From assembly GCA_964035545.1 (NCBI GenBank), contig OZ037766.1, positions 14,064,722-14,128,721 of the forward strand: DNA of 64,000 nt, in the 5' to 3' direction. The position numbers and the translations under genes are program-made. The notes beneath the pieces are model-generated. The model was not told the origin of the DNA and ran no database searches. It saw only the letters and a program-made list of their open reading frames with translations. Numbering within the stretch: the stretch's first letter is position 1; each line of letters begins with the position of its first letter. Positions 36,901 through 63,162 of this stretch are shown piece after piece. Source of the stretch: Bugula neritina. Taxonomy: Eukaryota > Animalia > Bryozoa.

Positions 36901-36936
36901 CAAACAAATCTCCGAAAAGAATCAAAACTATTTTAG
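929..36936 (+). CDS. SVIL: Supervillin (villin/gelsolin family; long disordered N-terminus, gelsolin repeats, villin headpiece); multi-exon, 5' end may lie upstream of the window
   Basis: Phase-consistent GT-AG exons: 929-1031, 1223-1440, 1938-2036, 2466-2685, 4630-4818, 5385-5510, 5680-6015, 7736-7921, 9871-9950, 11339-11397, 11629-11748, 12202-12330, 12480-12663, 12823-13001, 13256-13927, 14212-14362, 14552-14753, 15332-15475, 16730-16859, 18779-18988, 19348-19867, 22502-22676, 23925-23960, 26558-26779, 27170-27220, 28349-28539, 28845-28943, 30516-30735, 30858-31018, 31260-31545, 31761-31918, 32071-32216, 32352-32508, 32590-32729, 32957-33096, 33245-33414, 34037-34194, 34717-34904, 35069-35322, 35666-35793, 35948-36134, 36409-36680, 36850-36936. 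Supervillin-type motifs: [135 protein letters not shown]. Headpiece: [15 protein letters not shown]...[16 protein letters not shown]. Confidence 0.95.
6293..6503. mobile_element. Non-autonomous Tc1/mariner-pogo (Tigger-like) MITE, ~211 bp, in a supervillin intron
   Basis: Left end TA|CAGTGCTCCCTCCGTACCTCAC; right end GTGAGATACAGAGGGACCATTG|TA (reverse complement CAATGGTCCCTCTGTATCTCAC). TIR identity is 18/22 with TA on both flanks. The CAGTnnTCCCTC start is typical of pogo/Tigger TIRs. Confidence 0.75.
7078..7110. repeat. Short tandem duplication (GCTACTAGTATACATG x2)
   Basis: gctactagtatacatg a gctactagtatacatg. Confidence 0.75.
24715..25788 (-). CDS. Intronless nested antisense gene: coiled-coil, Ser-rich, C-terminal transmembrane (tail-anchored) protein, possibly KASH-like
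   Basis: 357-codon ORF in otherwise AT-rich, stop-rich intron sequence. Heptad-like helical N-terminal part ([17 protein letters not shown]...IGSLQKEL), hydrophobic segment [21 protein letters not shown], then a 37-aa tail. Minus-strand AATAAA at 24516-24521. An in-frame upstream ATG at 25950 is separated by one TGA. Confidence 0.75.
   Translation of the reverse strand: MHSVGRPMVNISDTRHTYQCSYEEVSKDAVEHRLNLQKSVINHVGSILDEINQRLGEMESAINLKLSPVHLRRLIDYIKEDLQPLKGYILRISNHGQHIGSLQKELVTKKCRQFGSPSASDSDRISRSSSSLPRFGSTYFSRHGSTRNHSPKYRKLSHAESFHSLATAPTSRLWTPICFQEKTQVRKNLQSSTKSTAATRRKNNHKPCSEQIKTFTDFKMDNLETTNSSEYDSSCQPSSLLPGVDTRICEKGNPSNSLITDTTSETSTRISSLVGNASQLCWSLRSKLSHFENRVRGECFVKLCSVVYVLLILLLINLSLQWWLRGWWGQWWRRICYRLGVVYKLYTGRENYNLPIM
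26866..26892. repeat. (GTAA)n microsatellite
   Basis: gtaagtaagtaagtaagtaagtaagta. Confidence 0.9.
27036..27152. repeat. 31-bp minisatellite x~4 (TTACTCGCACTGTACTTACTGTATTTTAAAG)
   Basis: Units start at 27036, 27067, 27098 and ~27129 and diverge progressively. Confidence 0.85.
31260..36936 (+). CDS. SVIL: Supervillin C-terminal gelsolin-repeat core and villin headpiece (sub-region)
   Basis: Gelsolin-type motifs ([67 protein letters not shown]) and headpiece ending at TAG 36934-36936. Confidence 0.97.
33111..33183. repeat. 23-bp tandem repeat x3 (CATAGTACACTGTGTACTCTATA) with an internal inverted repeat
   Basis: Three copies fill about half of a 148-nt intron; the unit contains AGTACAC-T-GTGTACT. 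Confidence 0.85.
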
Positions 36937-37257
36937 TAGTGACAGTTTACTCGTTGCATTTCCACAATACCCGTAATTGACTCGCCAAGTTTACAGTCGA
37001 GTGTTCTATTTTTTTATTCAGTCCTTTAATATTCTGTAGTATGCAAATTCTGTGTTATTTAACTCTAAATAATATGGTTATATGCACATTTCTTGTACTC
37101 AAGACTTAATTGTTTCAAACTTTTCTCAGATCTATGCTAACACAGTTTTTATTGGCGCCATTCTATGAGCATGCATACATTATTTGTGTATTTTAGTATT
37201 GAGTATTAGTAACTACTATAGCAGTGGAGATGTATTTATTAATTCTAGAGCATACAT

Positions 37258-37263
37258 AATAAA
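37258..37263 (+). terminator. Candidate supervillin polyadenylation signal AATAAA
   Basis: Canonical hexamer ~320 nt after the stop codon. Confidence 0.4.
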
Positions 37264-40189
37264 TTATTTATCAATAGTTTAAATTTTAAAACACTGCACC
37301 TTGTATATAACTATAGGCATAAGTGTATGCAATGCATCTGTGATTACTTTATATCTTATTCAGTTAAATCTCAGCAACACTACCTTGTATTTAGTATTGA
37401 GAATTATTGGTGCTGTTGCTTAGTTAGGATTATTTTTATGTTGCTAACCTAACAAAGTGGGCCAACCCTTGACAATTCTGTGTTCTACTCATTATGTCTT
37501 ATTAGCTACAATAATGTTTGAGCAAACGACTATTTGAGTTTGAAAAATATGTAACGAATAGTATGTAATGTTATATAACTTACTTAGTTGTTATAGCATT
37601 GAAATCATTGACTGTATTTTTAAAAAGTGCACTATGCTTGCATGCATTCATCATGTTAATTAAATAATACAATCTTTTAACAATTATTTTGTTTTCCATA
37701 CTAAATTGTATTACTGTGCCTTTTGTTGGTCAAATATTTGTTCCCTGGGCTACTAGACTTATCTGAAACAAACACTGTAAATTACTTGATGGCAGGTTGT
37801 AAAAATTCACCATTTTGATATAATTGTGGGTGTTAATTCAATCATATCAGACTTATTTGAAAAATAGCATTCTAAAATTAATTGATCCTAGTGCTAGTGA
37901 CATGTTACCCTCAAGATGGACTAAAGATGTCGAACCTAACTTCTGAATATAATATAATAGAGCAGTTTCCAAATTAAAGTTCTAAGAAGTAAAGTCAATA
38001 TATTCCCCCATTAAGGAATTACTTTGCAACTTAAGTGTGTTTCTTCACACCTTCCATAATATAGTTTATGGTCTCAACACCTAACAAAAAAAACGTAAAT
38101 ATAAATCAAAGAGAAATGTTGAAGGCTGTGGCACCATAATAGTAGACCAAGTTATAACAAACTTTCCCACCATTATCATAGCAGCCTGAGAAACACATTA
38201 AATTCTCTAAGCTGTGGTTTTTATACACAATAACTGGTGACTGAAGCTACTGCAGTTTATTTATATCTTGTATTTCTACACAAGAATAACTTGAGAATAG
38301 AAAAATTGAAAATGGTCGCTAAATTTGGGACAGGTTGAGCTGCGCATAGCGTGAAGTTATGCTCTTATATTATTCTATCTGAATGCATGGTATAACAAGA
38401 ATAATAAAACTTGTTCATCAAACACAAATGCACTATGTATGTGACACTCACTAATTCTACTCATTATGTCTAGTTACAATGATATTTGAGCAATTCTAGT
38501 GCAATCATTATCTGGTACTATATATTGCTTAAGGTTGAATATAAAAAATTAATCTATGAATATACATAATACACTATAAACTCCAATCAATAATAATTGT
38601 ATTTGTAAGCCAAGACTAACCGGTTCTTAGTAAAATATATTGTATGTTCACAGTCAACAAAATAAATACAGCGTCCATTTTTATAAAAAAAAGCCTTTTT
38701 AGTCATCTAAAAAGCATGTTGTGATTTTATGTAAAATTGACCTAACAGAAGAAAGCTTTAAAGAAATTTAATTTTTTTAAGCTTATTACAGTTGAACTGA
38801 GCTTTAAATAAAGTCAGCAGGGCAGGTTGAACAGAGGCAGTTACCTAATACTCTTACGTTCATTTTTGGCAATGTACGTCTGCCTGCCTGCGTGTATATT
38901 AGGATAACATATTATATTCGTTATATACAAAACTAGCAAAGCTACCTTTTGAAAAGGAAAATTCTATAGGTAACAACTCAATAAGAAATTAAATTAACTT
39001 TAAAGATATTATCAGCTCATTAATTGACTTGACAATTCCCTCTTTATTCATCACAAACATGCCTATCTCTTTATCTCATTGCACTAAATTCACTTTATGA
39101 AAAGGTGTAATCATACATAGGTGATTCAATTGATAGATAGTGAGCATTTTACATAATCTTATATAACCTAAAAATATAACCAACTAGTGAAACTATTTCA
39201 TTTCTCTATATTATATATATTATAGTCATGTGTTCAACCAGTAAGTCTACTAGGTATTATGTTAAGCAGGTATACTGAGTAGTCAATGTCCTAGAAGAGA
39301 TGTATCTCCACCTTAATTCCTGACAATTATAGTCTAGTTTTAACTACAGCAGCAGAAAGTATTAGGGCAGTAGGATTGAACATAGGAATTAAGTATTGTA
39401 GTAAATAATTACTTCAACCACAAAACTTTTTTTATTTACAACTCACCAGGGAATAAGTTTTGTAACCATCAAGAACACAACTTTATTTTGACATGAAACT
39501 TTGCAACAAACTTATCATCTACTTTATTGCAGTAACGGTGGCAATAAATCAGCTATTTTAAAAGATTATTTTTTTAATTTGCTATACGTTACTTGCATGA
39601 CTATTTAATTCAACTTTCTCCATAACTATTTGAGTTGTGCTGTATATACACGCCTTCATTCTGCTAATATGTTATTGCAGTTGTTATTGCTATGAAATCA
39701 TTAAAAGGATCAATTTGTGAGCATCAAAGTTTTGACATATGTATAATTGTCAAAAAAGAAATGGATGTTTTTTAGCGAACTTCAAAGAATAATTGCCACA
39801 AAAGAAATTATGTGCTTATATTTATTAGATAGTTGCTTTTCAGGTACTAAGATGGTTGAAAAAAGTCACAAATTTGATTTTTGTTTGTTATGAAAGTTTA
39901 TGTGTATTAGCAGAATATTCAGCTATAATTATGTTGCACAAGTTTTGTTTTTGCGCTTTTTACAAGAATTTGAGACAATGCATTTTATAAAATTTAAAAA
40001 ATATAATGTTCTAAGAATTTAAACAAATTTTTTCCATATTTAAAACAGATTAAAAATACAATCTGCTTTAAAATGGTGACCAAGATTGTTTGTTATTCAT
40101 TACAAATGAAGCACGGCATATGAAGACATTGCATCATCAATCACGGAGTTGTCTCTCTGAATGATTTTAACGCTATCAAAGCCAAACTA

Positions 40190-41880: not shown

Positions 41881-42272
41881 AGTAGGTACAGTGTTAACTT
41901 ATAGTGATGTGTATAGTACAGTGTTAACTTATAGTGTTGTGTATAGTACTATGTTAACTTATAGTGTTGTGTATAGTACTATGTTAACTTATAGTGTTGT
42001 GTATAGTACTATGTTAACTTATAGTGTTGTGTATAGTACAGTGTTAACTTATAGTGTTGTGTATAGTACTATGTTAACTTATAGTGTTGTGTATAGTACA
42101 GTGTTAACTTATGGTGTTGTGTATAGTACAGTGTTAACTTATGGTGTTGTGTATAGTACAGTGTTAACTTATGGTGTTGTGTATAGTACTATGTTAACTT
42201 ATGGTGTTGTGTATAGTACTATGTTAACTTATGGTGTTGTGTATAGTACTATGTTAACTTATGGCGTTGTGT
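41881..42272. repeat. 30-bp minisatellite x13 (GTATAGTAC[A/T][G/A]TGTTAACTTAT[A/G]GTGTTGT)
   Basis: Thirteen near-perfect head-to-tail units with no spacers; source of the spurious ORF 41855-42274. Confidence 0.97.
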
Positions 42273-43328: not shown

Positions 43329-44220
43329 CAGTGCACTGGAATAGAGAATGGCGTTTTAGAATTGTATAAACTATGGCCTGAATATTAAACTCCTGTGCTC
43401 TTCAACTATTTCATAGTTATTCATTGTTTCTCTTTTCTCCAATCATGACAGGCTAATAATGATAAATGATTGACTGCTGGAGTGCGGAATAGTAAGACAA
43501 ATGAGTAGATTTGTGTTGAATATTATTGCAATAGAAGATGAACATTGGAATTATGATTATAATTTTCATGGGACAACATTTTTTATTTCGGTGTTTTACT
43601 TTGGAACTGCTCACTAGGCTGTTTTGAAGATTTGTACAACTTAGCATCCGCACAATTTACAGAATCAAAAAAATTAGGTTGCTCTAAAGTCTAAATGAAT
43701 GAATCAAGTATGAATAAAAGTTTTAATTTTGCTAAAGTACAGATAGTTTTCTGCATAAAGGTAGTCCCAAGAGCAGCCTGAATGATTTCATAGTTAATGT
43801 AGTAAGCAGTATACATTCAGGTCAACTGAGTCATCACTCCATCAAGTAGGATAAACAATAACAACTGTCTGAGCCAATGAGAATAGCCAGATGACTGGAT
43901 AATGCTGCAATTGACCTTTTCCCCAGTTATTTTTCCTTGTTGCAAAGTGTGTAACTTTATAATCAGCAAATTAATTAAAATAAAATAATATATTTTGCTC
44001 CTTTCTTGACACAAGTCAACTGTACAAATAACTTTCATGATTTGACAGACGTGGTAAAGCAAGTGTCAAATCACGAAATTAATGAGCAAAGAAGAGCATA
44101 TTTAGTTGCTAGAGCTGTTTCCAAGTGACATGTTTTTATGATAAATTTCTCTATCAAGTCAGAAAAAGTTGATTTTCTGGCGGATGTTCTATAGTTTCTT
44201 TAGCAGCCATTGACGTAATT

Positions 44221-44425
44221 TACAATGTGTAATGTAATGTACAATATGTAATGTATAATGTGTATTGTAATGTATAATGTGCAATGTAAGGCATAATGTG
44301 CAATGTAATGTATAATGTGCAATCTAATGTATAATGCTCAATGTAATGTGTATTGTAATGTATAATGTGCAATGCATTGTATAATGTGCAATGTAATGCA
44401 TAATGTGCAATGTAGTGTGTAATAT
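44221..44425. repeat. Degenerate ~19-bp (AATGT-based) tandem repeat
   Basis: Repeated ATAATGTGCAATGTAATGT units, ~10 copies. Confidence 0.85.
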
Positions 44426-44694: not shown

Positions 44695-47600
44695 ATGAAC
44701 CAACTCAGCATGGCCCACCTTTTCACTCTTGCATTACTGGTTATTCTTCACGTACCTCTGGTTTCCTCTTTACGAGACCTAATTAATGTTGACAATGAAC
44801 TAGACAATCAGGCGGAGCTAGATTATAGCACTGCCATGAATGGAAGGCTGATCAATGCTGCACAATACAAGACTGCGACATTGGAAAATGGAACTAATTG
44901 TTCCTTTAGCCGAAAAGTGGTACGGTCCATACGGTCATATCCACCAAATTTGTCCATTGATGGAACTATTTCTGATGGAACATCAATACAGGTCAACTGT
45001 GCTGACTTATGCTCTGAAATTGGTACTGCTGCCGTTACTGATAACACACCTAGTGGCAGCTTAACCAAGTTGCAGTCCTCAGAAAATGCAATTCAGAGTT
45101 CAACTTCGACGGATGCCACATACGTAATGGCCTTTACTGTTGACAGGTAAAACTCAACATCTTAAAAAAAATTAATATTGATGATTTGTATATATGCAAG
45201 TAAATTTCTTGCCCAGCTGTGATATACAGGCTTACTTTTAAAAAGCTACTGCTTATATATGTCCTAGCACAGCTGGTTATTTAACAACTATTTGTGATTA
45301 ACTTGTCCTATACATCTTAACATGCGTGTATCCCCTTTAATTAATTCATCCCCATTATCAGAATGAATGTATGCTGTTAAACTTCGGTTGCATTCCGTTT
45401 GGCTGACACTGTAGGGTATTAGTAACACCAATCTTAGAAAGCAATTTGAGCAATGCTGCAACCGGTTAAAGTGCTCTCTGAAATTTACTGAAGTAGCTGA
45501 GGGGTGCTAGTCCTACATGGAGAACCACTGCCTTACTGTTATGCATTGGCAAAACTTGTTACTTTCAGTCACATGCTTGTTTATCATATTAAGCAGCCCT
45601 AAAATGGCCCTCTTTGCCCAGGTGATTCTTTATGGGGACATAATTTTATGATCAAAACTAGCAGCTCATCAGGCTAAAATCTAAAATTACCATTTATTAA
45701 ATTATCATTGCTGAACATTTTTTTCATAAAGGATCAGGTTGCCATGTTATGACTGCGTTGTCTAAAAATTAGCTTTGCTATTTTTGTTGAAAATTACAGA
45801 CTAATTTTGAATATTAATAACTGAGTGGTAAATATACTCAGCACCCTACTTGCAGCCAGAAGACTCATACAATTTATTCACCCTGGTTTTTTTTAATCTA
45901 ACAGCTAACCAGGAACCAGTTTTACTACTCTTTAGTTGGCCATGTTTGTGCAGAAACTCCTCTGACCATATTTTTTGTATAACTTCTCTGATTGGTGAAT
46001 ATTAATAGCAATTTTGACTAACTATGCACTCTACAGCAGTAAATATCTCATTAAAAAATTAAAAGATATTTTTGATGAAAGATGAATAGTGGAAAGTTTA
46101 CATGTATGTCAATTGTTTTGGTGGAAATGAAGTATCACAACTTGACTGTAAAGTCAGCTAGCTTCAGTTATTGGTTGCCATCTGAGTGTCTTGTGGGACA
46201 GTTAGTCACACTTCATATTCACCAAGCCAAAAGTATATTTTTTAAAGTTTTAGCCAATATATTATACATATGTTGAAATGCAGTTTTATGACTTAATTTG
46301 CATCAAATCTGCAAAATTCTAAAAAATCTCATTTATATATACTGTCTTTATGGGAGCTCTAAACTTACCAGTCAAATTAAATGTGGCTGCACAAAGTAAT
46401 ATGTCATCCGTTGTTATTACCATCATCTAACTTGATGTACTCTCAATATTAAATAAAATAGAATGCCTTAAGTAGCTTTGAAAGTATGGGGTGCACGTAA
46501 TTATTAAACTAAAAGCAAGGTTGTATGAAAATATTCAATATATTATTTAGTTATGTATTTCTAGCTTTGCCTTATTTGAGAGAGCTAAACTGTTTATATC
46601 TGTAATGACTAATCTCTAATAGCTGCACCTGATTTTATTAATAGTTTTTTATAGTACAATATAGTTTTATTTTTTATTTGCAGCTTTGCTGAATCCTCTT
46701 TAGAGAATTTCCTGAACGTCATTTTCAGTAGAAATACTTTGAACTATAGCACAACCTTGGAAATAGCAAAATTAGATGAGCCTGGTAAATACTTGCTCAA
46801 GTTTAGATCAGAATTAAGAAATACGCTCAAGGTTATAGAATTGAATGAAGACCAGGAGTACTACCTCACCACTATGGTATTATATTGTAATTCTGTATTC
46901 TTATAGTCTAATGTATAGTATTCCTCTAAGGAAGTTGCTTTTTATAGTGTATAGTTAGTTCTAAGCCCTAAGGTATCGTAGCCTGTTGGCTAGGCAAATG
47001 AGTTACCTAATCTTTTCACATTTTTACGATGATGTCACACTATTTTTAAATTTCTATATGCAAATAGTAAAATTTTTCAGTCAGCCAGTATCCAGTCTTT
47101 ATTTCTTTTGCTGCTGATAAAATAGAGCAATGTTTTACACTTTGTATATAATTCCGGTAGGTTGACAGGCAAACTCAAAGCACGGTGATGATGTTAGATT
47201 CACTTGAAGTTCAACAGATTCTCGCAGTGCCCCACTCTTATATTCTAGAGGATACCTCTACATTCACCTACACAATTCAAGATTGGAAAATATATGACAG
47301 GCTTTTGACTATGCAGTAAGTTGAAGGAGTTTCAAGTGGAACAAAGTGCTGTGTAATTCAAGGCCATTAATGATTTAAGACTATTTTCAAACAAGAACTG
47401 TACAAAATAAATGAGAAAGTCAAAGCCAATTGAAATTTAGCCAGTAGTGTTGGTCCAAGAAGGTCAAAGTCAAGCTAGGGCTGAATAGTCTTGCAAAAGT
47501 ATCTTGGCTACAACTTAAATACAACTTCAAAGTTGGATACTCAATTACATTTACTTTAGAGTTTATCCCCCCCCCCCCTCAAAATCCTCAATTAACGCAT

Positions 47601-50600
47601 TAGTTTGGGCATCCTGACTGTAGCCTTGTGACAATTAGGAACGATAGTTAGGAACAATCCACATTAATAAAACCTTAAAAAATGTAACTTATTTTTGTTT
47701 TTGTTATTTATTAATATTATTGGTCAGTTCTTAAATAATAGCTATGGCACTAGTTGTTTATGGTAAGTGAAAACAGATTTTATTTCATATGGCTAATGTA
47801 AAATATAATATATCATATAGATAATATTATATATAATCTAGATAGTATTATATAGATAATAAAATATTCATAATAGTAATATGAAAATTCATTTTGATGC
47901 TGTTCAGTTTGAATTTAGAATAATTACGAATCAATATTGAAGTCATTTCAGTTTTGTCATTATTGGCTATACTTGGCTATTAAAAAGACTAAAAGCACAA
48001 CAAGAGTTGCCATAGTGATAGTTACAATAACCGTGACTCATAGCTGACCATTATGGTATTAATGTATAACATTACATGTTGAAACAGTTTTCAATAAAGT
48101 TAGTAAATATTTATAAGCTTGCCTGAACATTGTTTTCAAAGACTAAAGTTGAATTGAACAGTTTAGAAATTAAACTAGACAAGGTTCAATTTTCAAGTCA
48201 TTTAGTTAAGCAAATTTGAACAAGGAGTTTCAAGCACCATGGAGTTGAAAAATTTTGATGCACCTAGTTTTGAAGGACATTTTGTTAATTGCTTTAAACT
48301 TGTTTAACACTCCTCACATTTTGTATTGCTAGAAAGCATAAAATATATTCAATCCAGTTACTATCGTATATAGATATTTACGTTTCAAAATACTTTTTTT
48401 TCAAAAAAACTGAGATTTAGAGCATCTAATAACTGCACATATGACTGAAAGACTCTTTTCAGCTCTCTATTATACAACTTCTTCTAATTTTATATTGCAC
48501 AGAATGAGTAAACCTCATGTTTTTGGAGTTAGCAAGTTTTGAAACAAATGAATGGAGTTCAGCACCAATTTTAATTAATAAAAATTTTCAACAGTTTTGC
48601 TTCAAAACTAACTTTATTGTTATAAAAAGATATTTAATTTGATTTGCATCATGTTTGCACATTTTAGAGAGTTGCACAAAATAATGAACGACGGCAAGGA
48701 GCTGATGGCTCAGACAGGAAGACAATGTAGCTGCCCTCAACAGTTTCCACTATTTACCAGATGGCGGCATATCTCTGATGATGTTTGGAGTGGACTCGAC
48801 TGCCATTCCTTGAATGGTTCCACAGCAAGTCGTATCAATCCCAACTCCCACGACATCCAGTTTACTACAGATGGGGATGACTTAACTTACTGGATATCAT
48901 CAACTGACCCTGTGTTCACCAAGATAACAATTGATCTAGGCACCACATATGAGGCAAGCAAGATATCATTCTCATATTTATCTAAAGGATTAGTTGCCTT
49001 AGGAGTTGTATGCAAACACTTGAGTGTATAAAGATATAAGAAAGAAATCCCATAATGACTAATTATATTTTATACAGATATTCTATGCCACTCTTGCCCT
49101 ACTCACTGTACCTGAACATCTGGTCATTACCAAGACTTTCGGTAACACAGAAGATGTACTTTTCTTAGCTACAAATGATTGTTCTTCTACATCCAACCTG
49201 CCCAACGGTTTGCCTCGGGGAAGTCCATTACGGTGTGAAACCGACATGGCAGTTCATGAAAGGTATTCCTTTTGGTGACTTGAAAGAAATTGAAATATTT
49301 TTATTAAAATATTTTAATAAATCAGACTTTTGATTTAATAACAAATGTTTAACTTATGCCATTCTGTATTTACTAACAAAAATTGAAAATACTATAAAAT
49401 ATAACTAGGGAATATTTTTTGCACTTTGTAAGCCTATAGATATAGAAAACATACTTGAAACATGTTTGCAAAAATGATGTGTGATATAAGTATTAATTAA
49501 ACAATACCGCAAGTTATCATCACAATATTTTAATTACACAAAAAAAATGTATGATATTTTTATAGGAACACAGAATCTTCAACAGTTTAATTGACATTTT
49601 TTCAATTTCTCACTAGAGCTAGCTTAACCTTTGTTTTGTACAACACACATAGCCATTATAGTCCTTTCACTATTAGCAACTCATTGTTTTGTAGTGACGC
49701 TGGTAATGACCTATCAGGCGTTATGTTGCTGGATTGGGCAAACACGTTTCTGGTTAAGAATTTGCAGATAGATCTCAACTCATTCCATGCAGCAAGATTA
49801 GACGGAAAGTTTAGCGCGAAATCAGTGTCTATATACATGTATGGGTATGAAGCTCTGGCTGTTGTACACGCAATTCACGAAATAAAAATATATGGAAGGT
49901 TAGTTGACACTTTTGTGTGAAAGTGTATGTAAATAGTGTAGGACTTCACTGGTCCATCTTCCATGTTTGCTATCATAGCACATAGTCATTACTGGACCAT
50001 AACAGCTTGTCACTCAACTGTCCGAATATTTAATAAAACTGAGGTTGAGATTAATTGGAATACGATTACTGGTAAAAAGATCTCATTTGCAGCTATAAAA
50101 AAAAATTGATAAAGTTTCAACAGTCATATTATCTGAGAAAACATTTGTAGTTGTCCAAAATTGCTCTTCCTGAATTCTGATAGGCATAAAAATATCTGTG
50201 AGAATGAAATTTATGTCAAAATATAGTATCTCAATAATTTAATTATCTGGCGAATTTATTAAGAAAAAAAAATGTGATTAAATCTGGCAGCTTTGATAAT
50301 TATTTTATCATAATTCTTTATGGGAAAGAGATATGATTTTCAAGTTTGCCATTTTTCAGTTATATGCTGCTGCCAAATACTCATTGTCAATTGCAACTTC
50401 CTCGTTGCTTAATATCTTAGTTTGTTATACCCGAATAGAACAGAGCAAAGTGGGGATAGGTGAAAAAAAAAATATGTTTGTTATAAGTGCTGTATTATCT
50501 GTAGCTGTGGCTGCTCTCCACGTGGAGAATGTAGCCTTGAGAATGTTGATAGTAGTAGTGTGAGTGCTACTGGTACCAATGGAGCTTCTGGAGTATCGGG

Positions 50601-53600
50601 CCCACTGAGCAGAGTAGCTAGAAGTGCTTCAAGAATATTGCCTCTTCCTGATTATGTTCATTTTGGCTACACCTTTCAAGAAGTCTATGGATATAAGTAA
50701 GATTATTTGTTTTATATCAAAGCATACATGCCTGGTTGTTCATTTGATTTATTGTTTGTGCGCAATGTATGGTATTGATTTTACTTAATTTTGGTTGTTA
50801 TAGAAAATTTCAACATTTTTGCCAGCACCTACATTTGACAAGAGAATTTTATACTTCAAGAAAAAATATTTTGTATTTCTTTCAACTCTAAAGAAAGAAA
50901 TCAATTCCTATTTTATGGGGCAAATGACTTTTTGGTGTAAAAGTCCTGATGCAAAATTATAATTATTTTCTTTCTTATTTGTAAGGTGTCAACTTATATT
51001 ATGTTGAAAACCTGTAATGGTTTGAGATTGTCTAGCATCTTGCATATCAGGAAGTTTAACTAGATTATGTTCTGTTGGTTTCTGAGTGACGCTTGGCAGA
51101 GTCAAAAGCTCTTGAAAGTTTCCTCAAGTCTAAATTATGGAGAATCTTCAGTTTACTTTATAAATCTAACATTAACATGCATGGATTGGTAATAATTGTT
51201 AGCATGTTTCATCCGTATTACAGTTATTGTATTCTTATAATACTCTATAGATGCGACTGTAGTACAGGATATTCAGGACCTCTCTGTGAAGATTGCGCAA
51301 CTAGTTCCTACAAGATTGGAGAGGATTGTGTCGACTGTAACTGTTATAGTGATGCTGCTAATGCTCTAAATCAGTCGTGTGATGCAAGTGGCCAGTGCTT
51401 CTGCGATATGAGTAGACTTCAGCAAACTCAATACCCGAATAGAAAATGTGTAGGTTTTGATGCAAACCATTTAACTCTATAGAAAGTAGCTCCTAATTTA
51501 GCAGTTGTAATGTATTTAGTTTCGCTTAATACAAAGATGTCAATTTTAAAGCAGTAAAATATTCTGAAATTTCATTAAATTGCTTTTAGTTATATATTTT
51601 ATATTTATTCTCAACTCCGACAAAAAACTGCAGTAAACATTTTGTATTAATTATATAAAGATTTTATACCAAAATAGGTAATATTATGTTAATTTTATTT
51701 TCCCAGCACCCGTTTGTGAGCAGCATAAAACCCTCCTTTGGGCCCTTAGCCGGAGGTACTTTAATTACTATTACTGGAGGTTGGCTCAAAGATGTCCCGT
51801 ATGCCACTATAGGATTAGAAAAATGCTATGTCTTAGAAAACAGGTCAGCTTTACTTAATGTTGAATTGAAGCTTTTTCAGGTAGTGAAGTGTTTTGACAG
51901 CATAATATGAAGTTAGTATACCTCATAGACTTGAGTATACATTCAAAACCAGTTGTAGGTGTTCAAGACATTGAATTCTCAAATTTGTGAACTTACAAAA
52001 TAATAAAATTAGTTCACTTTTCTTATGATTTGTTTTTTTAAATGAATATAATTATATAATTATCTTGATTTTGCAAAAGAATTATGAATTGAGCTGTTGC
52101 TAGTTTTAGATCATGTTGATTTCTTTTTGTTTGAAACTAAATTCAAACTTTTGGCGCTGTGTGCGTATAGCAATATATACCATCTTTATTAGTTCACCGA
52201 CATATGCCCTTTCTTCAACAGTTGAATGCTCAGTCATCAAATGTTAAATATAAAAATCTACTATTTTAGGCTAGCTGTAATGTGTCTATCACTGCGTTTT
52301 CATCACTTCAGGTTATGCGAACGGATGTTTCAACCAATGTTTGGAAACAATTGCATAGAATGAAACCACAGTCATAAGTTCATGCAGGCCGAAACCCCAA
52401 ACCCCTATGTACAAGGATCTGTACATTTAAGCAAAGGAAATGCAGTGTATATAAAAATATGAGTCACCCACAATATGTAAGACTGAAGTTACTCTTCTAA
52501 ATTCTTGTTGTTGAGAAAACTTGTGTTTTTCTTTTAGCACACACACTGACTCTCAGTTTTCTTGTCTCACACCAGAAGCAAGTAGTCCAGCGTCGGTTAA
52601 AGTAAATGTGACAGACATTGATTCTACCACGACAAGATTTACGTACAAACCAAACCCTAACATCACCTTAATTGGCAGAGTAGAAGTTACCACAAGGTAG
52701 TTATGTTCTCCCATATTAAGCTTTAGTTTTTTTGTCGAGTGGAAGGTGAGTTCCTTCAACTTAAAAACATAAAGTTCAAATTTAAATCCAATTAAAAAAT
52801 CCACCATTGTGATTTGAAAGTTGCACTACTTTTGTTGTTTCTCTGAATATTTTTATAAAAAATCATACAAAGTTTTAGTTTATTAGTAGAAATTAATGCC
52901 ATTTGCAAAGTTTGTTTTAAAGTTTGAAAATCATAAATTGGTGGTTGTTTGTACTTTGATAACGAATAACATCTACTTATTCGTACAAGAATTTTCTGTA
53001 TATTTATATATTTTATATATATTATACATAATTTAATGTTATATGATAAATTGGGCTTCAAGTAGTTCTTAGCTTTATATTAGTTTATTCATCTTTACTG
53101 TGAACTGCCTGGCTAATATCCAGTCACGTTGGGTTGGGCTGAGACTAGGCCACAGGTACCCAAGCAGCAGTTTGTAAGATCATAGTGTGCTCATAGCCCA
53201 AGAGGGGGGTTTCTAAGAGGATAAAGGATCAGTATAAATATGCTGACTAAACTAACATCAGGTGTTACAAACAGCAACTTATCAGCTGCCAAACTATAGT
53301 TGATTTATAGTTTGCAAGTTGTGGGTATCTAGAAGATAAAACTGTATGGCAACTTTGTTTCTTGGTTACACTTGCAGTGACTGTAGGGGTTGTTGGAGAT
53401 TGCCACTTGCTGTGTGGAACTGCATGAACTCTGCAGTATCATCATATTAATTACATTTGTTGAAGAGAAGTAGATTTTGGTAAAACCTGAAAATGTTGTA
53501 TACTTTGTATATTCAATGCGTTTTATTTAATTTTGTAGCGGAGGTGTGGACATCCCCATAGCTGGTACAAATCTGGACTCCATTGCTAATCCCAAGATAC

Positions 53601-56600
53601 AGGTTACCATCATCTGTAAATCAACTAGTGAGGAGATCGCAACTCTCCAAGGGGTAAGTAATATCGTAATTAAATTTTAAACCTTTCATTTGATTTCTAG
53701 TTGGTCAAACTTGGTAGCCATTTAAACACATTCATAAGAATAAAAAAGGTTGTTGATTTCACTTGTTGACTACTAAAAGCTCAAACATTAAATACAAACA
53801 ACCCGTAGACAGCTTCAAACAACCAATCAATAGGCCAGGCTTATAAACACTCTGCTTAGCCTTTGTTCCTAGGTTTGGTGGTCTGAAAATAGATTTTCTC
53901 ATTCTGTTCAATTCTATTAAATGTCACACATTGAGAATCTAGAAGTTGTATCACAGCGCTCTATAATATTGTCTATTGTTAGAGCTGAAATTTTAACTTC
54001 AATATCATTGCAGTCACTTATGAGAGATTTTGTATAGTAAACTATATTTGTGAGAAGTATAAAATGACAAAGAAATACTTTGCTGTTTTTTTATATCAAC
54101 CCTTATGAATTCGATTTTTTGCTTGAGGCCTTCAAAGTTATGCTCATTAGTTGAATAAAATGTGGCTTGTAGAGTTCCATATTCTAGTATCATAAAAGTG
54201 AATAATGTAATTAGCTCTAATAATAGAGAGCATTTTGTAAAACCAATTAATGAAAAACAGTGAAATCTGAAAAGACAATATAACTGAAAAAATTAAAACT
54301 AGTAAATATTGATTAATAACATTCCGATGTAAAATACTGAAGTATTTGGTACACTTCTTTCATGCTAAATCTTTTAGTATAAAGTGTAAAGCACGAACAT
54401 GTTCAGGTATTTCAAACTGCATACTAGAAACTGATGTTAGTTGGTGCTGTGCTATATAACATATCTTGTATAGCAATGTTGAATAATATATGTTTAGTAA
54501 TGTAATGTAACAGCAACCATATTTTTTAAATATATTGCCAATTGCTAAAAAAATTGTAGAAACATACTGTATCGAATGAATAAAATAAAAAAGCTAAAAT
54601 TTTTTTTAACCATTTATGTATCCTGTGTATCGTATTACAGTGAGCATGTGTGTGTCATATTTAGGATTGCAAGGCTTTAGACTCTCAGAACATGAACTGT
54701 AAAAGTCCCGACTTTACTGGCTCCCTTCAGAATAGTCGCTGTGTTGCCAGCCCGAGTGGGAGGAGGAAGAGGGCCGCGGGAGACAACTCTGACCTCTACG
54801 AGTTCTCTATTGGCTTTGTGTTGGACGGCGTGGAGGAGTTTGAAAAGGCTAAAGACTCTCCTTGGCTCGAAAAGACATCTCAAATGGTGGTGCAGCCCAA
54901 CCCTGTTGTCTTGCAGTTCAGTGAAAGCAACAGAATCCGAGTTGTTAAGTCTGACCATCAACAACTGGAAATTTCTGGCCAGAACATGGAGTCAGGTTAG
55001 TTGATGATCTTCTGTGACTCGAGTTTAAATAATTAGCCAACGGCTATCAGGTTTTCACTGGGATATTCAATTCTAGGCACAGTAATTCAAGACTATATGG
55101 TTAAGATTGGAGTTGGGAACTGCACTACTGCTGTCTTATATCACAACCTGTTAAAGTGCGAAATGCCTGCTCAGCTGCCTGAGGCTGGTAATGATTGGGT
55201 CGCCAGTCCATACGATGAACAAGTGAAAATACCAGCAGTTGTGGTGAGTCTTACCCATTCCCATTGTACAAATGCTAGTTACTATCTTTTGCTGCAATGC
55301 TTGTGTTGGCCATTAATCCTTCATCAATGAGTTGTTATGATTGCATTGATACTTCACCAAGAAGTACCACTTATATAAATGTGCAAAAAATAATCTAATC
55401 ACCTATTAAGGTTACTGGCATAAAGCCACCAACTAAAATAAAACTTTATTAGCAAAGCTGTATTCAGCTAAAGTTTAGTAACTTTAGAATTAAATGAACT
55501 TTCTTCACACTGACATTCAATAAAGTTAGTGAGCATTTACAGTATGGAGCTAGTGTTGCCATATTCAAACAACACTTTCTTGTATCAAAGAACATATGAG
55601 ACTTTTTCAAACAACTATTTCATGGCCATTTATTCATTGTCCTTTGCTGTCTCTAAAAGGAGCAAATAGATTGTAGTATCATGTGTTACAGGTAACCGTT
55701 GGAAACATACACACCCAGGTAGGCTACTTAGTGGAAGAACCTGTGATGCAGCCGCAGAAAGGACAACATGTAGCCACAGCAGTTGCAGTACCTGTTGTAG
55801 TGGTGTCTCTTCTAGTAATCTGTGGAGTGGCAATATTTATAATTGTACGCAGAAAGCAACATATCCAAGTGAAGAAAATAAATAGCTCAATGAAAATGTC
55901 AACAAGATACGTTCATGGTATGTATGACCAAAGAATATTATATTACATTATATCATATTATAGCATACTATGCTATGCTATATTATATTATATTATATTA
56001 CATTTTATTATGTAATATTGTATTATAGTACATTGCATTATATTGTATTATACTATATTATATTACATTATATTATATTATTTTATACTACATTATATTA
56101 TGTTATACTATATTGTATTATATTATATTTTATTATCATCTATTTTTATTATTTAATATTACATTATATTATGTTATATTGCAATATAATATACTGTAGT
56201 ATATTATATTGTATTATATTATACTGTACTATGTTATCTCATACTACATTATATTATATTATACTGTACTATGTTATCTCATACTACATTATATTTTATT
56301 GTATTATATTATATTTTATTATATTATATTATATTATATTGTATTATATTATATTATACTGTACTATGTTATCTCATACTACATTATATTACATTGTATT
56401 ATATTATATTATATTATATTGTATTATATTGTAGGTCCTCAAGGCAAAGGATTTGGTGCAGCTAGTGATCCTTTTGATTCAGAATATATGGAGCAGCTTC
56501 AAGATCGGCTAATTCCCCGAGAACACTTAAAGTTGGGAAATGCATTAGGTCAAGGTCAATTTGGCAAGGTCTTTGCTGGGTCACTTGAAATGAAAAGTGG

Positions 56601-59600
56601 GTTAAAAAAGAAAGTGGCAGTAAAGACAATGAAAAGTAAGATTTTTTGCTAGCTAAAGTTACATTTATATAGCAGTGTACAATCCTTTTATTGCAAAAAT
56701 GCATTGTCGTAATATTTATGTCCTACAACACATTCTATTGTGTTAGAAATAACTAAAAAGCTCTTTGTTGTCATGGAGAAATTCAAGAAGTAGTTATAGC
56801 TCTAAATTATTTTCTAATCTCGTCAACAGTTTTCTACTCATGTGTCACAGCTTTAGTCATTATATTTTATATTTAGCTAAAGTGTTAGAATACAAACGTC
56901 ACTGGATAGCTGCCATATTGGTATGTAATTGAACTGATATTTTATTAAAATTTCTAGCTGATCTTCTCCTTACTGATGTTAAAGCTGTACCTAACTTTCT
57001 ACAAGAAGCTGTTTTGATGAAGGACTTTGACCATCCTAACGTCTTGGCCCTGATAGGGGTGGTGCTGAATGAAGAGAACATTCCCATGGTTGTCATTCCA
57101 CTGATGGTCAAAGGAGACTTGAAGAAAGTACTCCGAGATGAGAATGAAGTATGTTCTCTCCTTTGTAACATGAGTTGAATGGAAGACAATTACATATTGT
57201 CACTTAGTGAATGTCACAGTTATGATTAGTTGAATAAATTTTTAGAATCCGCTTTTAGAAACTCGAGTGATGCTTTTATTTTGACAGCTGACCATAAAAA
57301 CTCCAAAAGCATAATTCACAAAATAATAAAATTGTTGCTATACAAAGATTAAACAGTGGTGATTTTTTTAGAGTCAGCTATTGATAATACTTTACAATGA
57401 CGCTATAATATGACATCATGATAAGAAATGTTTTTCTATCTTCCAACTTTTGTTTTCACGTGCAGGGTTTCGTGGTTGGAGATCTATTGCACTTTGGGCT
57501 GCAAGCTGCATCTGGAATGAGCTATTTAGCTGAGAAGAATTTTATACACCGAGATTTGGCAGCTAGGAACTGTATGGTTGATGAGCAATATCTGGTGAAG
57601 ATAGCGGACTTTGGCTTGTCACATGACATTTACGGGGAGGATTATTACAGAGTGCAGGACAAGACTAAGCCACTTCCTGTTAAGTGGATGGCGTATGAGA
57701 GCCTTACAAGTGGCAAATACACCGTGCAGTCTGATGTGGTAAATTATTTCGCTGATAATTTATAATTTAGTACCTATTAACTATGGGCTACCAAATTGCT
57801 AGTTGAAAATTGTTTTATTGCATGATCACCAAAATAGGCTATTTTCTTTTTATTTTATTTTTGTAAGCATATTATTTCATTTCACATACTCATAGATCGA
57901 TTATAAGTTGTTGGTCATCAAAATTGATATCACACTGTCACTGAATATGAACTTTTCTATGATACTTGCATGTATGCATAGAGAGATAGAGAGAGTTGGA
58001 ACTTGGCAATTGTACAAAAACTAAAGTGTATAATAAGTTGCATAATGTTAATATTATTTTGTTGAAAGTCCAATTTTTAAAGCAGCATAATTTGATTTCT
58101 CAAACAGTAACAAGATTTTCAGGGACTCCACTAAAAACAAATGTCAGATCAAAGTCTGGGTCTTTTACAATCTTTACCTTTTCAATAAGTTATGACTTAT
58201 CTTTGACACCTCATCACTTGCTTACACTCTAATTCAGCACATCATGTCAACTCAAAGCACTTTTGTGGGTATCAAAGGATAAATGTTGAGATACATTCTT
58301 TGAATCATGATCATTTGTTGACCAACAACGCAATTGCCAGGCTATATTTCACTTGCTAATACAGCTCTGGAAAGTTTTCCTTGTTAAATCCAGGAATTCA
58401 TTATTAGATTGTTATTGCGTTAACTTGTGATACATGTTTTGATAAATAGGAAAGTAAATAGTCAGCAAATATTTCTAAATGCCAGTAATGTTTTCTACTT
58501 TGTTCCTTGTCAACAATTGCTATCAACAAACTGCTAGTAAAGTTATGTTCAACTTCACTACCCACACCAAGCTTGACTTGATAATTTCAAAGAAATGAAT
58601 ATTGGGCTGCAACAAATCTACATTAGAATTAGAAAAATATTTTTTCACAGTAGTAAGCAAGTTTAACAAGTTGAATGACTGAAGGCTGTAGAGCATCTCA
58701 TCTGTGATAATTGGTACATTCGTTGCAGTGGTCATACGGAGTGCTTTTGTGGGAAATACTAACGAGAGGAGAGACCCCTTATCCAGGAGTTAACAACTAC
58801 GAAATTAAAGATTTTCTCAAGATTGGCAAAAAACTGGATAGACCAAGTTTCTGCCCTGATGAAGTGTATGTTGCCTATCCTAAATGTGATTTTAAGATAA
58901 TTGCTATTTTTATCTTATGCAGATAAAATGCTGTTGCAAAGTTATAAAACCTAAAATATATTGACTGAACACATTGTATTTTATAAGGAATGACAGATTC
59001 CAAGAAAACAACAATTCAATTAGTTAACAACAACTGTTTTCAAATATATGCTGTATTTAAGAGAGAAATAAATTATGTGATTAGCATGTATGTGGCTTAT
59101 TTGTACTGCAACTGATGCTTAGGTATGACTTGATGTGTCAATGCTGGGACTTGAGACCTTCTGATCGCCCAAAATTCTCCAATATTTGTGAGCTGCTGGT
59201 ATCATTTATGCACTCTGATGGTGAATATAGCCGGCACATTACCAGTCAGATAGAAGATGATTACCTCGTGCAAACCTTTGCGGAAGAAGATAGTCCCATG
59301 TTCAGTGAACCAGCTTCTGAGTAAGTACTCTTTACAGTGAAATAACAGAGAAAAATAGAGCAAACTTGAACTGAACATGAGTTAATGTAAGCTGCAGATA
59401 GTAATGTCTGAACTCTCTGCACCATATTGCAGTGATGAGCATGTGCAGTAGTTTACTATTGAATATTGACTGATATTATTTGTGTACAAGATTCATTTAA
59501 TACTTCATTCTTGCTATAACTACAGATATGCACCTTTGCTCCAGGACAGGTAATGGCTCTTCTTGACTTTTTTGATTATGCAACAATCAATCTTGTGTAA

Positions 59601-60835
59601 TAATTTTCAAAATAGCTAAAAAGATTTCAAGGCTGCCTAAATTTGGCACTTCTTTATGTCATATCGCAACTGGCTATTAACACAATGTTATATAATAACT
59701 TTTCTGAATAAGTTTGTGTTATTATATTAGTAGAATTCTATACTAGTAATATACTTTTTGGCGTATGCCAAACACTGTATTAGTTAGAAGCAGCTCAGGT
59801 GATCTAGTCATACTAAAAGTGATTGGTGACGGATGAAAGTGTTGTTGATCAACTTCGATTACTGCATGTGCTCATTGATTTCACTTTTATTTTCCGCTTT
59901 AGAAGCTAATTCAATAATAAAATGAACTGATTCTATAAAGGATTTGTTCAAACACCACTTCGCTTTGTTTCAAGCAATTTTTGTAGTTGAAGATAGCAAG
60001 TGGAATTATTATATTTTCAAATACTAGAAGCAAGAGGTGCATACCGGTTTTGTATTTCACCAGTTTGTTGCTGGTCTTGTATGTATTACATGCTAATTTA
60101 GCTGAATTGTCGTTCAACCTGTGTGCATGTGTGCGTGTGTATACGAATGTGTGCATGTGTGTGCGTGTGTATTGTATTATTGTGGGTTGGGAATGAGATG
60201 AGCTTATTAGTCAAAACTTAAGATGTTCACTCAAAGTACACCCCAACCAAAAACTGTTACAGTGCCAGCAATGTTTTTATTAATATATTGGGTTTTTCAA
60301 TTTAGAAAAAGATTTTTTAAATGATATATGTTAACTAAAAGTATGACATTCCTGTTATATTTAAAATAAACTAAGTTTTAGCAGTTAATCTAAAAAATAA
60401 AACCAATATTGAAATCTATAAATATTGTATGTACAATTGGTGGCATGCCAGAACTTTAACAACATTGGTTGTTGTAGCTATGACATTGCTGAACCAGTAT
60501 TTGCTGCTCCTGGTAACCCAACCACTTCCAATGACCAATCGTCGCTGAACAAAAGCAACAACAACAGTAACAGATTCTCTCAACCATCTGAAAGAACGAC
60601 TGTTAAAAGGGTTACTAGTGACAACGACTACTTGCAGCCAACGCTCTCCTTAAAGAAACCCAACTCTGCCCTTTCTCTCACTGGTGTTGAAGGCTCCATT
60701 ACATCAAATGGTAAATCTGTTGGCTATAGCAAAAAAGGAAGTAATAATAAATCTGAAAAAATGAATCTGACTGGCATGAAACTTGCTAATCAAGCAGAAA
60801 GAAGCAAGCCTAATCCTTATTTACACGTGTTTTAA
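44695..60835 (+). CDS. Receptor tyrosine kinase, MET/RON (HGFR/MST1R)-like kinase and IPT domains with an usherin-like LamG + laminin N-terminal + laminin-EGF ectodomain; ~1460 aa
   Basis: 21 coding exons totalling 4383 nt, in frame: 44695-45146, 46684-46876, 47161-47315, 48668-48953, 49078-49262, 49695-49898, 50505-50696, 51251-51449, 51707-51843, 52538-52696, 53539-53653, 54665-54995, 55077-55243, 55692-55917, 56435-56635, 56958-57148, 57466-57738, 58729-58865, 59123-59320, 59526-59549, 60478-60835. Signal peptide [28 protein letters not shown] motifs [16 protein letters not shown] and [43 protein letters not shown] followed by RRK. Kinase motifs [69 protein letters not shown]. Confidence 0.93.
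55935..56431. repeat. (ATATT)n-type degenerate pentanucleotide microsatellite filling an RTK intron
   Basis: ~500 bp of TATTA/TATAT/TACTA pentamers between exons 55692-55917 and 56435-56635; source of the Y/I-rich spurious ORFs. Confidence 0.95.
56435..59320 (+). CDS. MET-family tyrosine kinase domain exons (sub-region of the RTK)
   Basis: Catalytic Lys, alphaC Glu, HRD and DFG are all present. Activation loop DIYGEDYY and LPVKWMA are MET/RON/AXL-type. Confidence 0.96.
60120..60171. repeat. Imperfect (GT)n microsatellite
   Basis: tgtgtgcatgtgtgcgtgtgtatacgaatgtgtgcatgtgtgtgcgtgtgta. Confidence 0.75.
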
Positions 60836-61664: not shown

Positions 61665-62737
61665 TCTCTCCCTTGCAGTCAGTCGATACGACTATGACTG
61701 TTTTATGGATTCGGCTTAAATTTGGTTGCAGCTCTCCACGCAGCTCTGTTGTCAGCTGTCTACTGCCAAGAACTCAAGTTTATTGCTCTCCATTTCATAT
61801 TCCTCTTAGCAACATCTTTAAGTCTGAGTCTAGGTTGCCCTGTATTTCGTTTACCCTCTTTCAGCTGAGAGTAGAGCAATTGTCTTGGTAGCCGGCTATG
61901 TTCCATCCTGTGCACATGGCCTAGCCATCTCAGGTTCTTTTCTATAAGGATGTCAGCCATGCTTGGCAAATTGGCACGTCTTAATATTTCTTCATTCGTA
62001 ATTTTGTCATACCATTTTACAGCCATAATGTCTCTCAATTGCCTCAACATGAGAGCGCTTAGCTTCTTCACCTGTGTCCTGTATATTGCCCATAATTCTG
62101 CTTTATACAGCAGGCTTGAGAGCACAACCGCTCTGTAGACTTTACACTTTACTCTGATGGATACGTGTCTGTTGTTCCAGAGTCTCTGCTGCAGCTTTCC
62201 GTAAGCCGCACTTGTTTTGCCTAGTCTGCTCCGTAGCTCTTTATCTATTTTTGCCGTACAGGAAACAGTGCTTCCTAGATAAGTAAAGTCTGAGGCAATT
62301 ACAACTGGTTCTTGATCTATCATTACAACTTCAGGTTTAGGTGGAGGGTGAATGAGTTTGATTGGCTGGTACATGCATTTTGTCTTTTTAATGTTGATTT
62401 TTAAGCTAAACTGAGCTGCTGCTTTTGCAAAGTTGTTCACCAGCACTTGCATATCTGCAGCGCAATGTGCCACCAAAGCACTGTCACCAGCTAACAACAT
62501 CTCTCTGACTAGGTGTTTGGTAGTACGGGTCTTAGACTTGAACTGAGCCACATCAAAGAGATCAGCCCCATGTCGAGTTTGAATATAAATCCCTTCATTT
62601 ACATTTTTAAATGCCACTTCAAGCATAGCGGTCAAGTATAATAAAAATAGTGTGGGCGCAAGAACACACTCCTGCTTGAAACCATTGGTTACTGCAAACT
62701 CATGAAACTGCAGACTCTGAAATTTTGTAAACTTGCT
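61665..62737 (-). mobile_element. 5'-truncated RTE-clade non-LTR retrotransposon (reverse transcriptase fragment), inactive
   Basis: ORF 61760-62740 has RTE RT motifs (NGFKQECVLAPTLF, FTYLGS, KVYRAVVLSSLLY, LRWLGHVHRM, RLPRQLLYSQL). The catalytic (Y/F)ADD is degenerated to LAGD, and a premature TAG precedes TADNRAAWR. The GA-rich 3' end is flanked by a perfect 9-bp TSD, CAATTATAG (61656-61664 and 62738-62746). Confidence 0.93.
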
Positions 62738-63162
62738 CAATTATAGGCAGTTGGACTAAACTGTTATTGCATAAACTTGTGCAATATAAATTGAAAATGC
62801 TACTAGTAAAAGACAAATTTAATTTTGATATGTACATGCAAGGTTTGCTCTTGCTATAGTAAGCTAGTAATAGCTTTGGGTTCATGACAATGATAATTAA
62901 TTATTAATCATACCGTAAGTTGGTAGAGAAGTTGTGCATTTCTACATTTTATTTAATTATTAAGGGCGTCATGTGGCATAACTTCTTTAATGATACTTAA
63001 CCATCTTTAAAAATGCTAAATTCAAATAAATATATTAAAGCAAAAATACAATCATAATATAAATAAATAAATTTATGCTAATGAGTGCATTAAATAGCAT
63101 AAATTTGTTCTCTTTGATATTATTTACATAACACATCAATGTCATATGTGTGTAAGCTAATT

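Follow-up and report, generated by a model that had tools for sequence, protein, structure and literature searches.

Positions 44695-60835 (plus strand) of the 64,000-nucleotide window analyzed here (Bugula neritina, Bryozoa; assembly GCA_964035545.1, contig OZ037766.1, positions 14,064,722 to 14,128,721 of the forward strand) are very probably occupied by a single gene for a receptor tyrosine kinase (RTK) of 1460 amino acids, the architecture of which is apparently undescribed. Its 21 coding exons extend from ATG 44695 to TAA 60835 and splice, free of internal stops, into the order signal peptide, LamG-like domain, laminin N-terminal (LN) domain, laminin-EGF (LE) domain, truncated LE domain, three IPT domains, transmembrane (TM) helix, and a catalytically intact MET-type kinase. 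Every acceptor is AG; the donors are GT apart from a GC at 48954 (intron 4). In the Type S genome of B. neritina, the 21 exons follow each other in the same order and without stops, all 20 splice sites including the GC donor are conserved, and the amino-acid identity is 88%; the one intact frame from signal peptide to kinase, as read in the original prediction, is thus confirmed. Queries consisted of single exons or of P0015, a database protein related to exon 4 which clusters with NCBI entry KAF6040752.1 of the Type S draft (PMC7576161).

The signal peptide (residues 1-25, 44695-44769), recognized by hydropathy, has a hydrophobic counterpart at the N-terminus of two relatives (L015 and L018). 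The remainder of exon 1 (44770-45146) encodes a conserved, cysteine-containing N-terminal cap and the start of the LamG-like domain, with 31-38% identity in distant relatives; exon 2 (46684-46876) provides the core strands of this domain, assigned with the ESM Atlas, and appears from the comparison with Type S to be under positive selection, and exon 3 (47161-47315) provides the C-terminal part, bounded at its 3' end by an intron exactly shared with usherin. The LN domain is distributed over exon 4 (48668-48953), which precedes the GC-AG intron at a usherin intron position, exon 5 (49078-49262), and exon 6 (49695-49898), whose 3' intron is again exactly common to usherin. Exon 7 (50505-50696) carries the first half of LE1 and an insert of ~55 residues with a basic, convertase-like site (RxxR at 528-531; RAKR or RKKR in relatives), and exon 8 (51251-51449) the second half of LE1 and the truncated LE2, ending at the phase-0 fusion junction. 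The LamG-like domain is recovered in the ESM Atlas, not by alignment: residues 70-318 of P0015 score 0.97 to Laminin_G_3 (PF13385) clusters, with a TM-score of about 0.6, and residues 300-660, which cover LN and LE, align to netrin and laminin at lead level (features 0.80, TM-score about 0.5). Pfam returned weak matches to EGF_laminin in exon 8 and to F5/8 in exon 4. The predicted order of the head stood, while the two laminin-EGF domains did not survive in full, LE1 having its eight cysteines broken by the insert and LE2 retaining only six of eight.

The putatively MET-derived body begins with exon 9 (51707-51843), the first half of IPT1 (Pfam TIG, 6e-8), and proceeds through exon 10 (52538-52696; second half of IPT1, start of IPT2), exon 11 (53539-53653; IPT2), exon 12 (54665-54995; end of IPT2, start of IPT3) and exon 13 (55077-55243; IPT3), TIG being above cut-off in exon 9 and weak in exons 10 and 13. 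A furin-type site, RRKR, is located in IPT2 (residues 792-795, 54761-54772); it is kept in the metagenome contig L026 introduced below and recurs as a basic cluster in a paralog on C5. Exon 14 (55692-55917) comprises the end of the stalk, the TM helix (about 55776-55847) and a basic stop-transfer segment, in agreement with a hydropathy profile of one TM segment plus the signal peptide. Exons 15-19 (56435-59320) encode the juxtamembrane region and the tyrosine kinase (residues ~1031-1297, 56524-59210; Pfam PK_Tyr_Ser-Thr), exons 20-21 (59526-60835) a low-complexity C-terminal tail with conserved tyrosines, with the stop codon at 60833-60835. The expected three or so IPT domains, TM helix and MET-type kinase were accordingly found, and neither Sema nor PSI was matched in any exon by Pfam or in the PDB, again as foreseen. 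The glycine loop, the lysine of VAVK, the glutamate of helix αC, HRD and DFG are all intact, and from these motifs, the signal peptide and the single TM segment the kinase is predicted to be active. Tyrosines Y1187, Y1191 and Y1192 lie in the activation loop, and the tyrosine motifs YxxQ (1018 and 1315) and YxxP (1393) are all conserved in Type S. Two AlphaFold models were of low confidence (predicted local distance difference test scores of 32 and 44), and fold searches with them were uninformative.

A probable single gene across the head-body junction

The junction 51449|51707 is of phase 0 and conserved in the genomic sequence of two other genomes, the intron measuring 257, 245, and 82 bp in the three. 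The shortest of these belongs to a 3.6-kb metagenome contig (L026) from a distant species, 28-52% identical, in which the LN, LE, and IPT1-3 exons are colinear and the exon boundaries match where checked; the contig has a coverage of 1.8 and a single in-frame stop early in exon 4. Conserved splicing in Type S and colinearity across the junction in L026 argue for the single-gene reading. On the other hand, the NCBI annotation of GCA_010799875.2 places two genes at this locus, as would be expected if a secreted usherin-like fragment simply lay next to a headless MET kinase, or if the joined model were a prediction artefact. The break in that annotation, however, is located inside exon 12, away from the head-body junction, and exon 8 is already connected to exon 9. 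It coincides with a 1-bp deletion which is missing from a short-read contig of Type S, where the frame is intact; judged from these reads, the deletion is an assembly error, and it is because of this deletion that the public annotation is split. Since, moreover, the junction intron is short, exon 9 has neither a start codon nor a signal peptide of its own, and the paralogs repeat the same order of head and body, two adjacent genes or an artefact are scarcely credible. The public draft annotation thus conceals the gene by dividing it.

As for the surroundings, the upstream neighbor (30400-38700, plus strand) combines gelsolin and villin-headpiece domains in a supervillin-like manner and is syntenic in Type S. 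A 326-residue open reading frame at 61760-62740 on the minus strand shows a weak reverse transcriptase match, has no counterpart at the Type S locus, and may be a retroelement remnant. A tandem repeat with a period of ~30 bp at 42044-42243 gave staggered, self-overlapping matches to the Type S locus (L014). AT-rich simple-repeat tracts occupy 44220-44420, upstream of the start codon, and 55940-56430 in intron 14, which spans 517 bp in the window and 860 bp in Type S.

Descent of the head and of the body

For comparison, exons 1-9 of the usherin gene in this genome were assembled (C3:5.9567-5.9627 Mb), from a usherin-like locus with a long LE array (G000:C3:5.95-5.96 Mb). In shuffle-based alignments the LN domain matched this usherin at z=13.5, and z rose to 18 for the whole head, at 27% identity over 509 aligned residues, and a family profile scored 41 bits against usherin, compared with a shuffle maximum of 7.8. 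Three introns interrupt both genes at the same codon and in the same phase (266/271, 362/362, 491/499), a coincidence with a chance of about 6e-6; a fourth has the same phase at a distance of at most four residues, and the phase series 2,0,2,0,2,2 follows that of usherin. The LamG-then-LN order is likewise that of the usherin N-terminus (PMC7317166). Descent of the head from usherin, as claimed originally, is therefore highly probable on the strength of the LN score and the three exact introns. The claim that segments match usherin throughout is borne out for LN; the LamG sequence match is marginal (7 of 500 shuffles scored as high) and the LE similarity is not usherin-specific, nor detectable as usherin-like by profile. 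The N-terminal motif pair failed altogether: 'RLINAAQ...' of exon 1 gave z=0.8, with 199 of 500 shuffles scoring equal or better. The kinship of the LamG and N-terminal portions with usherin consequently rests on fold, position and intron phase.

This marginal LamG match, and the fact that the nearest ESM Atlas clusters of LN-LE are netrins and laminins, would suit a head taken from a netrin or a laminin chain and combined with an unrelated LamG domain. Such an origin is nevertheless very unlikely, given not only the usherin scores, introns and domain order above, but also that PF00055 fails to match the LN domain, that none of the laminins and netrins in the PDB matched at E<10, and that, within the genome, the exon-4 profile recovers usherin and none of the laminin or netrin loci.

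The body points elsewhere. Its IPT region finds human MET 656-779 as best PDB match, with plexin-A next, and the three domains begin at the equivalent of MET IPT2. For the kinase, exon 16 ranks MET (1e-14) before RON (3e-11) and MER (3e-9) in the PDB, and exon 17 places MET entries at the top ranks, except for one EGFR-labelled entry, 1 bit higher. A MET origin of stalk and kinase, part of the original prediction, is supported by these matches. It can be envisaged that the 5' end of usherin, encoding signal peptide, LamG-like domain, LN and LE, was duplicated and the copy fused in phase 0 to a duplicated MET-like gene, of which the last three IPT domains, TM helix and kinase would have been kept and Sema, PSI and IPT1 replaced. 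Because usherin and a Sema-PSI-IPT-kinase gene both persist elsewhere in the genome, the chimera represents an addition, not a replacement. The latter gene, MET-like (C4:9480400-9492200, minus strand), has a kinase 44% identical to that of the window, with a single tyrosine at the MET activation-loop pair; PF01403 also finds matches elsewhere in the genome. Invertebrate RTKs are known to have exchanged ectodomains, and the present gene adds a well-documented example of exon shuffling, the donor of which can still be recognized by its intron positions.

Relatives and divergence between lineages

Two paralogs were read. That at C2:14.575-14.590 Mb possesses a divergent head, LE, IPT, TM segment and a kinase 55% identical to that of the window, with which it groups in a tree of five sequences whose long branches make it indicative only. 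The second (G000:C5:12421800-12435100, plus strand, L041-L042) contains LamG, LN, LE, three IPT domains and a TM-like segment, with no kinase match within the stretch read; its tail, with numerous tandem QYxD tyrosine motifs, makes it look like a phospho-adaptor or co-receptor. The heads of the paralogs are highly divergent from one another. The genome contains 19 kinase-exon matches at E<=0.001, including clusters on C3 and C5, and MET-like kinase exons gather at C3:23.588-23.686 Mb, C5:16.62-16.71 Mb, C5:17.46 Mb, C7:3.25 Mb, and C6:14.77 Mb, some near IPT matches, which suggests a large expansion; at C7:3.265 Mb a weak LN match precedes a close kinase by 14 kb. On C1 (52400-61050 of G000:C1, minus strand, L002-L004), a gene with a signal peptide and the same LN type, without LamG, continues into Ig-like exons and a haem peroxidase exon (PF00141) and is possibly another shuffle of the usherin-type head; an intronless ankyrin reading frame stands just upstream on the opposite strand.

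Marine metagenomes supplied further homologues of the head (L013, L015, L018, L022, L054), several of them originating from a study of plastic debris in which encrusting bryozoans were dominant (PMC5069773), and we infer a bryozoan source for them. In the same plastic-debris samples, L015 and L018 constitute two head types, each 31-38% identical to the present gene in exon 1 and both with many amino-acid variants there; they are probably two paralogs or two species. L018 and L019 are probably one sample assembled twice and do not provide a test of polymorphism. Protein homology searches in other taxa returned no full-length relative, a negative made weak by limits of length and word.

The Darwin Tree of Life assembly of B. 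neritina, tzBugNeri2.1, originates from Plymouth (PMC11480708). Between the window and the Type S draft, the introns of the gene differ by 5-12%, whereas short-read contigs of Type S agree with that draft at about 98-99.9%; for this reason the two genomes appear to belong to different lineages of a species complex. Purifying selection acts on most of the protein, the ratio of nonsynonymous to synonymous rates (dN/dS) against Type S being 0.43 overall, 0.16 in the kinase, 0.31 in LN, and 0.15-0.34 in IPT1-2. Exon 2, the LamG core, departs from this pattern with 39 nonsynonymous versus 2 synonymous differences (dN/dS 5.6) and 54% amino-acid identity. The proportions of nonsynonymous and synonymous sites changed (pN 0.25, pS 0.05) differ by Fisher's test (p=0.003), and the excess is stronger against gene-wide synonymous divergence (p=8e-5) and intron divergence (p=3e-9). 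Identity is 91-93% in the introns flanking exon 2, and pN does not exceed 0.045 in coding stretches of the gene upstream. This comparison indicates positive selection at the tip of the receptor, where the changes cluster in two predicted strands (residues 159-180) of a low-confidence model. Sequencing error was ruled out as a cause, the divergent Type S exon 2 being repeated in three short-read contigs, and so were an ancient allele and gene conversion, because synonymous divergence is low and that of the flanking introns is not raised. In the juxtamembrane and TM segment (55692-55850), nonsynonymous changes also exceed synonymous ones (12.5 versus 2.5), without reaching significance.

Candidate ligands and comparison with known receptors

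One functional gene belonging to an expanded bryozoan family would explain these observations best. By analogy with RTK biology, furin-type convertases could cut the precursor at RRKR in IPT2, and perhaps in the LE1 insert too, and the outermost LamG-like jelly-roll would then bind a surface-bound, fast-evolving partner, which might be a protein or a glycan carried by a gamete, by a microbe or by another cell. LN, LE and IPT would form a rod-like stalk and clustering element; clustering would lead to trans-phosphorylation of Y1191 and Y1192, and phosphorylated tail tyrosines in the YxxQ and YxxP motifs would recruit SH2 adaptors. Such a receptor may be pictured as a MET that is switched on by contact and whose recognition tip is specific to its lineage. 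Given how strongly positive selection bears on the exon for LamG, a fast-evolving partner appears likelier than a conserved matrix protein, and recognition of such a partner by the tip is, on balance, slightly favored.

The exposed tips of receptors often come under selection from pathogens. The change in LamG could thus represent escape from a docking pathogen or parasite, while the receptor itself would serve matrix or ciliary adhesion, the role suggested originally, by binding a conserved host ligand through LN-LE. Purifying selection on LN would be in accord with this role, and the LE region of usherin binds fibronectin and collagen in vitro (PMC7317166). Against it, only one and a half LE domains are retained, LE1 is broken by a variable insert, LE is not usherin-like by profile, and the very divergent heads of the paralogs fit different ligands better than one matrix ligand, so that adhesion of this kind is rather doubtful. 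A soluble growth factor, HGF-like or other, might alternatively act on the IPT stalk, the usherin head being a mere spacer or an autoinhibitory cap. The stalk is indeed homologous to MET IPT2-4, and IPT3-4 of MET is said to bind HGF. The main HGF site is Sema, however, which is absent here; at least three kringle matches were seen in the genome, all isolated and scattered, with no four-kringle HGF-like cluster among them; and a spacer would not give a dN/dS above 5. Control by a growth factor is hence improbable.

Returning to the fast-evolving partner, a more specific proposal is that bryozoans grafted a usherin head onto MET to create a lineage-specific receptor for self or species recognition (colony fusion, sperm-egg contact or symbionts), the LamG tip of which diverges adaptively between cryptic Bugula species. 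This remains speculative and is, as it stands, unlikely. Several points weigh against recognition of a fast-evolving partner in general. The receptor is known here from genomic sequence, and positive selection derives from a single pairwise comparison, in which Fisher's p becomes 0.07 after correction for 21 exons, while the binomial test survives (0.002). The exon 2 protein is identical in three Type S contigs and the draft, unlike what is seen at a highly polymorphic allorecognition locus of the Hydractinia Alr or Botryllus fuhc type, albeit in few samples that partly stem from one project, and the AlphaFold models are too poor to place the 30 changed residues of exon 2 on one surface. The gene is nonetheless a concrete candidate for bryozoan recognition processes, for whose molecules no description was found, and if the proposal were true, it would open recognition and reproductive isolation in Bryozoa to molecular study for the first time. 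In any event, a usherin LamG-LN-LE head can evidently be wired to a kinase, which would make the gene a natural reporter of what such a head binds; in usherin the ligands of this head are poorly known, and it is enriched in deaf-blindness missense mutations (PMC7317166).

No description of a LamG-LN-LE-IPT-kinase receptor was found in the literature searched, the coverage of which is incomplete, in keeping with the original suggestion that this architecture may lie outside the described RTK families. A published survey of MET-like receptors, which selected Sema-containing proteins, reports for Lophotrochozoa no types other than Met and Met-LP, both with Sema (PMC6374515). With MET and RON, the gene in the window shares the kinase, the IPT stalk, the Y-x3-YY activation loop, the single pass and a furin-type site in the ectodomain; it differs in the lack of Sema and PSI, in having three IPT domains instead of four, and in the position of the furin site, which is in IPT2 here and in Sema for MET. 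MET further features a bidentate YVHV/YVNV docking site in its tail and a juxtamembrane DYR Cbl motif, both absent here. The Met-LP receptors of Lophotrochozoa and Echinodermata combine a complete plexin ectodomain, Sema included, with a kinase (PMC6374515). Like the present gene they are invertebrate RTKs in which a MET-like kinase is coupled to an altered ectodomain that includes IPT domains, but in the window an unrelated usherin head stands in the place of Sema. The collagen receptors DDR1/2 are also RTKs with a galactose-binding-like fold (discoidin there, LN-type here) in a head that could read matrix, but the kinase in the window is MET-type and not DDR-type, the head is LamG-LN-LE, and the stalk is IPT. 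Plexins have a homologous IPT stalk, and in B-type plexins the IPT region close to the membrane likewise carries a furin-type site, whereas the gene described here is devoid of Sema and PSI and of the intracellular RasGAP-RBD (GAP domain). Usherin, finally, with 10 LE, 2 LG and about 32 FN3 domains and a short PDZ-binding tail (PMC7317166), is much longer in its arrays than this receptor, which has one and a half LE domains, no LG or FN3 array, and an IPT stalk and kinase in place of the PDZ-binding tail; what the two have in common is the succession of signal peptide, LamG-like, LN and LE, together with the three exact introns.

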